From assembly GCA_025201805.1 (NCBI GenBank), contig MU619303.1, forward strand, positions 19,827-83,826: DNA of 64,000 nucleotides, given 5' to 3'. Below the pieces are notes generated by a model. The model was not told the DNA's origin. It did not search any database and saw only the letters and a program-made list of their open reading frames with translations. The translations under genes were made by a program, and so were the position numbers. Each line of letters begins with the position of its first letter. Position 1 is the stretch's first letter. This DNA is from Parasitella parasitica NRRL 2501 (taxonomy: Eukaryota; Fungi; Mucoromycota). Shown here piece after piece: positions 38,301 through 40,883 of this stretch.

Positions 38301-40087
38301 TTTTGAATCCGTTATTGTGAAATATTGGGGTATTGTATTATCGGACTACATATACAAAAATTATGTGAAGATGGATATTTTTTTAGCGCAGCACACATTA
38401 GTTTTATTCGCAACTTTAATGTCAATTTCGTGATGTAAACTTTAATAAACATTTCAGTTACCAAAAGGTATATTCATAAAGACATTGTCTATAAACAAGT
38501 CCATATTATAGTTGTCAACCTATACCTTTATCATCATCTACATTCAATCTTTTTGTCAGAATCATTAGTCACTCATACATCAAGTGATGTCAAAAGTCAA
38601 ATAGAAATAAATCTGCCAATTAAAGAGTTACACTTTTTTACGAATGCATCCTATAGGTGTATTTATACACAATGTCATCATGCTAAGGTTAGCATATTAT
38701 AAACTATAATAAAAGGGTTTTACTATCTAAAATTTGTGGAATGTAGGATTACCCATGATTTACCTTAGATATCTGCAAAACTAAGGATGAGACCTTGTAG
38801 AAGAGACCTATGTGATAGCCTTGATATAATACATCACAATGTATATTTCCTCGCATTTTTATATTGCGCATTCAGTATAAATAGCAATAGATCTGCAGAA
38901 GAAGTATACAAATTTTGATTAATGGCAGCAGTGAAAAAAGAAGCCCAACTTGCCCCCCCCCAATTCTCTCTTGTAACTGTAAAAACTAGAGAAAATAATA
39001 AAATAAAATTCTTTTTAAAATGTTGTTTTATACTTGTGGCCAAGAATAATATGCGTCACTCAGTCAAAATAAAGCATATATCAGTTGGCCCTGATCATGG
39101 CGGCATCAGACAACATATATAAACGTGGATTGGTTTGCTCCTTATGCAAGCGTTTACTTGAATTTTTTGTGATCTTTGTTTGTAAAGGCGCACAGCAAGA
39201 ACATTAACGTATGCATAAAATGAAACTGCCTCCAAAAGATATACGATATGTCTAATCTTGGATAGTAGGCAGTGTCTCTAGTAGAATCTCAGACTAATCC
39301 TTTACATTGTAGTGGCGAAGTGAAGGTAGTATCAAGGATGTCACACTATCGTTAGAATTAACTGTTTGCCATCACCAAATGTGGCGCGATAATGATATTG
39401 AACAGCTTTGCTTTTTTCGTGAAGCGAAACAAACTTGCAGACCAGCTCTTTACGTGTAAAAAAAATGAAACTTTATCTATGAGTACCTGTTTAGCATGTC
39501 CTATGGGTTCTTGCTGAATTAATAAGATATTTAGGTGATATAAAATAGAGTAGAAAGTGTATCTTTTAAATTGCTATGCAATCAACCTTGCTTCTAATCA
39601 AAATTTAGTAGAGCGACATGGTTTCAGTTTGCGTATTACATTCCAAATTGTAATACGAGGGATGTCTGAAACAGAGATCAGCAAAAAAAAAAAAAAAAAA
39701 AAAAAAAGGAGGCTCGTCTTTTCATTGTTTTGTGAGTGATCTGCTATTGTATTGTAAACTCAATAAGCATTTGTGTCCACTTGCAAGCCATAGTATACAA
39801 ATATCACGACAGACTTCCTTTTTCACTTCTGTAATTTGCATTGGAATCATTTGATGAAAGGTATAATGAAAAGAAGCGTGTCCTGATGTTAACAATTTTG
39901 AAGATGTAAAAACCATGCAAGCTAAAAGAGGTGATCGTGATGATGAGAGATTTTTTTTTTTTTTTTTTTTTTGAAAAATGATTGATTTTGTTGGTTTACC
40001 ATTGCATTAAACTCTCTTTCTTCTCTTCTCCTTTTGTTTGGTTGTGTATCGACTAAAACAGACAACTGCGTCCCCAACAAGAAAATA

Positions 40088-40883
40088 ATGCTCAGTTACT
40101 ACAGTAAATTCTGGAACGGAAAACTTGGACGTATTTCGAGCCTTCATAAGACTACAACCCCTTCAACGTCTACATTAGAACTGCTACCAAACGATGACAG
40201 TAAGAAATTGAAGAATGATTTAGATTTGATGTTATCTTCACTTTCAAAGGATCAAGGCAACAATAAAACCAATAAAACCAATAAAACCAATAAAACCAAT
40301 CAAACCAATAAACAAGAAGCAGATGCAGGATACCCACTGCAGGAAGCTCTATATGGACTCATTGAAAAAATACAGCAAGCAACAGAACGATCACTCGACA
40401 ATCAAAGAGTAGATCCAAGTGCAAGGTTGCAGCAACAATTAGATGTTGCTTCGTTTGGTGCATTAGTAGATCGCATGAATAAAAGAAGACTGATAAGCCA
40501 AGTAAGCAATTCTTATTTGTGTCGGATGTTCGTGTATTGAATAGATTTGGAAAAAGGAATGGATATCGAATTCAGAGCAGCTAAGCATTGATATCGCGGA
40601 ATTGGTTGCAAAATCATCATGTTTTTTCAAGGTTGAAGATGAATATGACGAGCAGCGATACGAACTATCTCCCATCAAAGAGAGAGATATGTACTTGTGC
40701 CATATATTCAGTAAGATCAACCGACAATCAGCCAGAAGAATGGCCAACCAAGATGCCGAGATAAAACCTAGGAGGTCTATGGAAGATGAAGAGGACGACG
40801 ACTTGTTTTCACTTATCCACAAAGCTTCGAGCCATAATGCAAAATTCGCAGATCAGCGAGCCACCATGAAACTGCGCCCTTAA
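40088..40883 (+). CDS. Hypothetical protein of about 250 aa with five GoLoco/GPR-like repeats
   Basis: Two ORFs joined in frame by a 43-nt GT-AG intron (40502-40544). Repeats end in LDNQR, LISQI, YDEQR, MANQD and FADQR. Confidence 0.7.
40259..40312 (+). repeat. Coding 9-bp minisatellite (AATAAAACC)n encoding NKT repeats
   Basis: caataaaacc aataaaacca ataaaaccaa taaaaccaat caaaccaata translates to NKTNKTNKTNKTNQTNK. Confidence 0.9.

Follow-up and report, generated by a model that had tools for sequence, protein, structure and literature searches.

The GoLoco (or GPR) motif is found in proteins such as GPSM2/LGN, GPSM1/AGS3, Pins, RGS12/14, Pcp2, and GPSM3, and consists of an amphipathic helix followed by [RK]-hydrophobic-x-[DE]-Q-R. 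In a true GoLoco motif, the N-terminal helix occupies the switch II/alpha3 cleft of GDP-bound G-alpha (PMC12329598; PMC4660580). Its occurrence appears to be confined to metazoans and choanoflagellates (de Mendoza et al, 2014; PMC3971589), and later papers call it primarily metazoan (PMC4760084; PMC2954821), in agreement with a preliminary description of the locus studied here, in which GoLoco is given as known mainly from animals and their relatives. Full-text literature searches for a fungal GoLoco, or for the repeat family described below (including its member BATDEDRAFT_34058), returned no report. The locus encodes a small fungal protein with five tandem repeats; from the sequence comparisons presented here, it is a GoLoco-like array that diverges from the known motif, stays below the Pfam threshold, follows a unit grammar of its own, and belongs to a new lineage.

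The gene lies on the forward strand of a 64,000-nucleotide stretch of fungal DNA, referred to throughout as the window. An ATG at 40088 opens a first exon of 138 codons (40088-40501, +), which carries units c and d (repeats R1 and R2) and is followed directly by GTAAGC; a second exon (40557-40883, +; 108 codons and a stop) completes unit d with E-W and adds units e, f, and g (R3, R4, and R5). Together, these exons encode 138 + 108 = 246 aa. The length of about 250 aa given in the preliminary description includes four extra residues, I-W-K-K, that stem from a 43-nt intron model. This model does not hold. In annotated orthologues, the junction reads N-K-R-R-L-x-D-Q followed by E-W-I-S-N, without the added I-W-K-K. 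In a four-species DNA alignment (A7), the AG at 40555-40556 is the sole conserved candidate acceptor, and the sequence around it (AG, then GA(A/G)TGG) is invariant. Two Mucor species lack the upstream AG (40543-40544), and in Parasitella that AG falls out of frame owing to a 1-nt indel between the candidates. With an HMM of distant long forms of the protein, the match to exon 1 stops at model position 127 and the match to exon 2, read from 40557, starts at 128. Because the orthologue proteins, the DNA alignment, and the contiguous HMM match at 127 and 128 agree, we assign a conserved intron of 55 nt (40502-40556, +; GTAAGC...AAAAG).

The N-terminal part of exon 1 encodes a Y-x-x-K-F-W segment and a conserved helix, K-L-x-x-D-L-D-x-M-L-S-S-L, followed by a low-complexity (NKT)n stretch. 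The latter corresponds to an in-frame coding microsatellite with a 9-nt unit (CAATAAAAC, 5.8 copies; 40261-40312, +) and is longer in the window than in the Parasitella orthologue P0001, which has a single copy-like stretch there. A perfect T22 homopolymer at 39951-39972 precedes the start codon by about 115 nt and lies in what is presumed to be the promoter or 5' region. In all searches reported below, the exons were used separately and P0001 served as a stand-in for the full-length protein.

A word-based search with the open reading frame of exon 1 retrieved 21 proteins, including Parasitella and Mucor sequences; orthologue species include Parasitella parasitica, Mucor circinelloides, M. lusitanicus, M. 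fragilis, and M. saturninus. Identity to P0001 is 79% over exon 1 and, judged by eye, about 92% over exon 2. Across Mucor and Parasitella, orthologues share 56-79% identity, and the repeat residues are invariant. The genomic neighborhood is also shared: in the window, open reading frames from 41012 to about 43500 (-) match the C-terminus of a ribosome-biogenesis GTPase-like Tsr1, convergent with the repeat gene, and the two genes adjoin on opposite strands in both Parasitella (L001) and M. circinelloides (L002). A 3380-nt Logan contig from SRR14532552 (L014) carries an orthologue of 206 aa together with Tsr1, both without the introns of related genomes. Convergent transcripts were probably merged in its assembly, and its intron-free state suggests that the orthologue is expressed and spliced between D-Q and E-W.

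The repeats R1 to R5 of the window protein correspond to units c to g of a larger family, in unchanged order. R1 (unit c; 40349-40408, +) comprises a helix followed by R-S-L-D-N-Q-R, and R2 (unit d; 40454-40501, +) is of the Q-D/E-W type, has no arginine, and is interrupted by the intron after its glutamine. R3 (unit e; 40593-40658, +) features a helix, a long acidic linker, and D-E-Q-R-Y-E-L; R4 (unit f; 40704-40754, +) is a helix ending in R-R-M-A-N-Q-D-A, a Q-D type with no Arg finger; and R5 (unit g; 40797-40859, +) has an acidic cap, D-L-F-S-L-I-H-K, and a terminal K-F-A-D-Q-R-A. The five related segments picked out in the preliminary description recur exactly at these positions in the translation of the two exons and are conserved in the orthologues. 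Their endings are [DN]-Q-R in R1, R3, and R5 and x-Q-[DE] in R2 and R4. The translation likewise bears out the earlier observation that only R3 (D-E-Q-R) and R5 (A-D-Q-R) carry an exact [D/E]-Q-R triad, with D-N-Q-R in R1 and no arginine in R2 and R4.

In an alignment of seven close orthologues, the [DE]-Q-R of R3 and R5 is kept in all seven sequences, I or S replaces the arginine of R1 in three short-form orthologues that are more distant, and R2 (S-Q-E) and R4 (N-Q-D) lack an arginine in every member. Conservation in this alignment spans the whole C-terminal two thirds of the protein, beyond the Q-R ends. Profile-profile comparison (hhalign) of the units from these seven orthologues gave modest scores for the pairs R1-R4 (15.3), R1-R5 (16.1), R4-R5 (15.8), and R2-R4 (14.7), with reversed controls at or below 11.3 and a weak R3. 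Judged by these scores, the repetition in the window protein exceeds chance.

Searching 1.84 billion representative proteins with a profile of the seven orthologues yielded 128 matches at E ≤ 1e-3, of which 68 also pass a threshold of E ≤ 1e-10. Most matched proteins are 400-1440 aa long, and the repeat region of the window protein aligns to their C-terminus. All named members among the 30 matches looked up belong to non-Dikarya fungi, and the named matches sampled include no family member from Dikarya. The family is present in chytrids (Batrachochytrium dendrobatidis, B. salamandrivorans, Polychytrium, Entophlyctis, Thoreauomyces, and others), in Mucorales (Absidia, Radiomyces, Blakeslea, Mycotypha, Spinellus, and Fennellomyces), and in Mortierellomycota, Endogone, Glomeromycota (Acaulospora), and Zoopagomycota (Syncephalis and Basidiobolus). 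Examples are the hypothetical proteins BATDEDRAFT_34058 of B. dendrobatidis ("expressed protein"), RUS13739.1 of Endogone, and XP_051422160.1 of Radiomyces. The repeat family is previously undescribed and, by this sampling, old in early-diverging fungi.

The long forms of the family consist of an N-terminal region, a near-invariant P-P-x-Y, and seven C-terminal units of 32 residues (a to g), in which a helix is followed by R-[ML]-x-[DN]-Q-[R/D]. The P-P-x-Y is located just upstream of the array, and its first proline is conserved in at least 90% of long forms (alignments A2 and A4). Five units (a, b, c, e, and g) have a Q-R ending and two (d and f) a Q-D ending, in a fixed order; a frequent form of unit b reads R-L-S-R-G-R-M-D-D-Q-R-A-x-L. 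In the family HMM, the conserved glutamines of successive units are spaced by 32, 30, 32, 32, 32, and 32 residues, and the Q (and R) positions rank among those with the highest information content, so that the preliminary description's question whether the QR repeats are the conserved parts is answered in the affirmative. Unit e has a Q-R-[YF] that hardly varies within the family, with Q159, R160, and Y161 among the top positions. Family-wide profiles of the units align in register in each of the 21 pairings, with hhalign scores of 15-39 vs 4-11 for reversed controls; units d and f align over 32/32 columns with a score of 39.3. In three long forms, including P0035 from Thoreauomyces, the region upstream of the array matches the BET (bromodomain extra-terminal) domain with a best E of 5.9e-8; either a fusion or merged gene models could account for this.

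An HMM of the long-form C-terminus, built without any short-form sequence, matches exon 1 of the window gene with 48.9 bits (E 4.6e-15; model positions 62-127) and exon 2 with 78.3 bits (E 5e-24; model positions 128-228). By both this match and the order of its units, the repeat array of the window protein belongs to the family. The protein lacks the N-terminal region of the long forms, the P-P-x-Y, and units a and b and, unlike long forms, has its own N-terminal segment and the (NKT)n insert. This short form has so far been found in Mucor, Parasitella, and a few relatives. The same genome also encodes a long-form paralogue (G000:C33:51503-52820, -; loci L009-L011), which comprises the N-terminal region, P-P-A-Y, and units a to g and is 61-65% identical to P0030 of Blakeslea. 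Its intron lies in the same place as that of the window gene, after the glutamine of unit d; this common position shows that the short form derives by truncation or duplication from a fungal long form, not from animal genes. By homology, the window gene is a truncated short paralogue that has lost units a and b of the seven-unit family, and not an orphan.

The likeness to GoLoco is found at the edge of detection. The gathering score of the Pfam GoLoco model (PF02188, among 24,736 Pfam models compared) is 25.1 bits. A relaxed search with this model, as proposed in the preliminary description, gave no match at E ≤ 10 on the window exons or on seven close orthologues, and no other credible Pfam family was found on these sequences. 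A six-frame search of the whole genome with PF02188 yielded no candidates, and singly scanned chytrid and Mortierella members likewise had no match to it. On the long forms, no Pfam family recurs as often as PF02188, which matches 11 of 82 at E ≤ 0.1 (best E 3.5e-5); the next in frequency is found on three. The best match, to unit c of P0068, covers model positions 3-21 and scores 23.5 bits; further per-protein scores are 20.1, 19.5, 17.7, 17.5, 15.9, and 15.6 bits, and the long paralogue in this genome reaches 11.3 bits at unit b. Scores of the long-form relatives range from 8.5 to 23.5 bits, none reaching the 25.1-bit cut-off, and most matches span just the 9-10 residue core (model positions 13-22). 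The two units missing from the window protein, a and b, are in sequence the most GoLoco-like of the seven.

Unit profiles were also compared with 177,635 distinct PDB sequences. For a profile of 26 long-form units from five loci, the GoLoco chains of GPSM2/LGN (4jhr, 4g5q/4g5r, and 4g5o) took ranks 1-3 at E 0.19-0.26. An independent profile of 20 short-form units, from the window and four orthologue loci, had three matches only, the top two being the LGN peptides 4g5o and 4g5q at E 0.8-0.9. Solved LGN GoLoco chains are thus the best PDB match for both profiles in this reciprocal test, although E-values of 0.19-0.9 are not significant alone, the information lies in the ranking, and HMMER slightly favours short targets. 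Positions 2-25 of the short-form profile align to residues 1-21 of the LGN peptide, covering the whole motif with a 3-residue gap. Together with a MAFFT alignment in which the linkers of units a, c, e, and g are 2-5 residues longer than those of b, d, and f, this gap substantiates the earlier remark that the linkers of the Q-R repeats are 2-5 residues too long. PDB searches with exon 2 alone, with the orthologue profile A1, and with a profile of R5 only (A5) did not retrieve GoLoco, and the whole-family profile A2 matched designed helical proteins only. A search of ESM Atlas, a protein language-model atlas, with P0001 and with the array of P0027 gave no usable match.

Some other candidates were discarded. 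Ferritin and RNA-polymerase matches to the long-form unit profile are attributed to chance, as they rank below GoLoco at non-significant E-values (0.56-1.4) and involve an M-T-N-Q-D-like string only. By motif pattern, readings of the units as PKA pseudosubstrate, Sfi1/centrin, WH2, IQ, D-box, or RVxF motifs were rejected, as the key residues are absent.

Like GoLoco motifs, the fungal units combine an amphipathic helix with a downstream R/K-led, Q-R-containing end; when the LGN peptide is compared with R5 of the window protein, the helix half is nearly identical and the Q-R end is matched too. The fungal units form tandem copies spaced by about 32 residues and are predicted to be unfolded outside the helices; a comparable interval separates the GoLoco copies of LGN and AGS3. 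The structures of LGN with G-alpha-i described by Jia et al. in JBC in 2012 reportedly define a "double Arg finger" consensus, R-psi-[DE]-[DE]-Q-R. Unlike GoLoco, the fungal units often have an asparagine in place of the acidic residue before Q-R, and two unit types end in Q-D, with a strictly conserved aspartate in units d and f at the position of the GoLoco Arg finger. The canonical helix-to-triad spacing (a core of about 19 residues) is exceeded in the Q-R units of the window protein, whose linkers are about 2-5 residues too long. The GoLoco consensus also has a first conserved glutamine, and reading of the unit sequences revealed no conserved counterpart of it in the family. In contrast to animal GoLoco proteins, the fungal family lacks TPR, RGS, or RapGAP partner domains. 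GPSM3 (AGS4) and Pcp2 (L7) resemble the window protein in being small and having no recognised domain besides two to five tandem motifs, and the coexistence of the window short form with a long scaffold paralogue in one genome fits the same comparison, although no homology to GPSM3 or Pcp2 is detectable outside the motif. Taken at the level of sequence, the GoLoco likeness is reproducible in both search directions, at the edge of detection, and formal membership in PF02188 fails. The original designation as GoLoco/GPR-like repeats is supported in part: GoLoco is the closest motif in Pfam and PDB, and all Pfam matches stay below 25.1 bits.

Structure prediction bears on how the array may be built. 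With the seven-sequence alignment, AlphaFold2 was uninformative (pLDDT 48); with 94 sequences, it predicted seven helices at a mean pLDDT of 75.9, reaching 84-97 over units d to f, but with a pTM of only 0.29 and no confident packing. In P0001, the helices that each precede a Q-[RD] span residues 72-92, 100-120, 131-157, 165-186, and 206-226, so that the amphipathic helix expected before each triad is present by AlphaFold2 prediction. By amino acid composition, the protein falls on or under the Uversky order/disorder boundary. Such helices without a compact fold fit a conditionally folding array of helical motifs, as in GoLoco arrays, and would also be compatible with an extended structural repeat. 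The latter could be a folded alpha-helical repeat, a zig-zag of helices of about 21 residues in which N-Q-R and N-Q-D serve as helix caps and turns instead of ligand contacts. The strict 32-residue period with its short linkers would suit this architecture, as would the confidently predicted helices d, e, and f and the placement of every Q-[RD] in an inter-helix linker, with the Q-R and Q-D types in fixed order. We nevertheless consider it unlikely: the pTM stays low despite 94 sequences, a Foldseek search of the predicted model against the PDB gave no fold match (TM ≤ 0.13), and the composition is polar, with few hydrophobic residues, near the disorder boundary. Moreover, one helix per 32 residues would be unusual among known solenoids.

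An array of helical motifs need not bind G-alpha, and the family could instead form a multivalent scaffold for another partner, such as a kinase, a phosphatase, or a cytoskeletal or ubiquitin-pathway protein, with a coincidental likeness to GoLoco. We regard this as a genuine possibility, albeit a somewhat doubtful one. The likeness rests mainly on a core of 6-10 residues (a short R-hydrophobic-x-[DN]-Q-R). Of the seven unit types, two are Q-D and thus unable to supply an Arg finger, and among the named matches the family is not seen in Dikarya, where G-alpha-i-like subunits persist. The near-invariant P-P-x-Y of the long forms, a type of WW-domain ligand recognised, for example, by E3 ligases of the Rsp5/NEDD4 type, also points to other partners. 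Coincidence is harder to reconcile with the fact that GoLoco is the recurrent best match both ways, among 24,736 Pfam models and 177,635 PDB sequences, that the alignment of the short-form profile takes in the helix half besides the core, and that no different motif family surfaced in the Pfam and PDB searches. It is very improbable, finally, that the locus is non-functional, be it a decaying duplicate or a chance open reading frame. The shortness of the protein and the microsatellite within its coding region speak for such a reading; set against them are the intact frame and conserved splice sites, the orthologue identity of 56-79% with invariant repeat residues, the conserved synteny beside Tsr1, and the intron-free contig L014, which suggests a spliced transcript.

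We think it possible, though short of probable, and likelier than any of the other readings, that the family units dock in a GoLoco-like manner on GDP-bound G-alpha. In such a mechanism, the helix of a unit would lie in the groove between switch II and alpha3 of G-alpha-GDP, and the Q-R units would extend their arginine to the phosphates of GDP, slowing the release of nucleotide. One array could hold several G-alpha subunits together, and the short form might act as an array-only buffer, competitor, or modulator of the long scaffold, comparable to GPSM3 and Pcp2 relative to LGN and AGS3. The genome contains at least 12 loci above the Pfam cut-off for G-alpha (on contigs C128, C10, C148, C34 with two loci, C32, C79, C17, C24, C135, C111, and C154 of G000). 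The case for GoLoco-like docking is weakened by the strictly conserved Q-D units, the long linkers, the loss of the R1 arginine in some orthologues, and the lack of any Dikarya member among the named matches sampled. More broadly, and as a tentative proposal, early-diverging fungi may possess an ancient multi-GoLoco-type regulator of G-alpha-GDP that has been missed since every copy falls just under the Pfam threshold.

Fungal G-protein signalling has been described without a GoLoco-type GDI, and a conserved GoLoco-like array would add a missing class of regulator. The at least 12 G-alpha loci of this genome amount to an unusually large repertoire, and the family has been sampled across early-diverging phyla, including the amphibian pathogen Batrachochytrium and the Mucorales, an order that includes agents of mucormycosis. 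If the GoLoco-like reading is true, the mechanism either predates the animal-fungal split, in the opisthokont ancestor, and was lost in Dikarya, or it evolved twice by convergence. The fixed succession of Q-R and Q-D types would then represent a new sub-grammar, in which, for example, non-inhibiting anchors are interspersed among Arg-finger GDI units. Even without a G-alpha partner, early-diverging fungi share a widespread, unannotated family of seven 32-residue repeats with a near-invariant P-P-x-Y.
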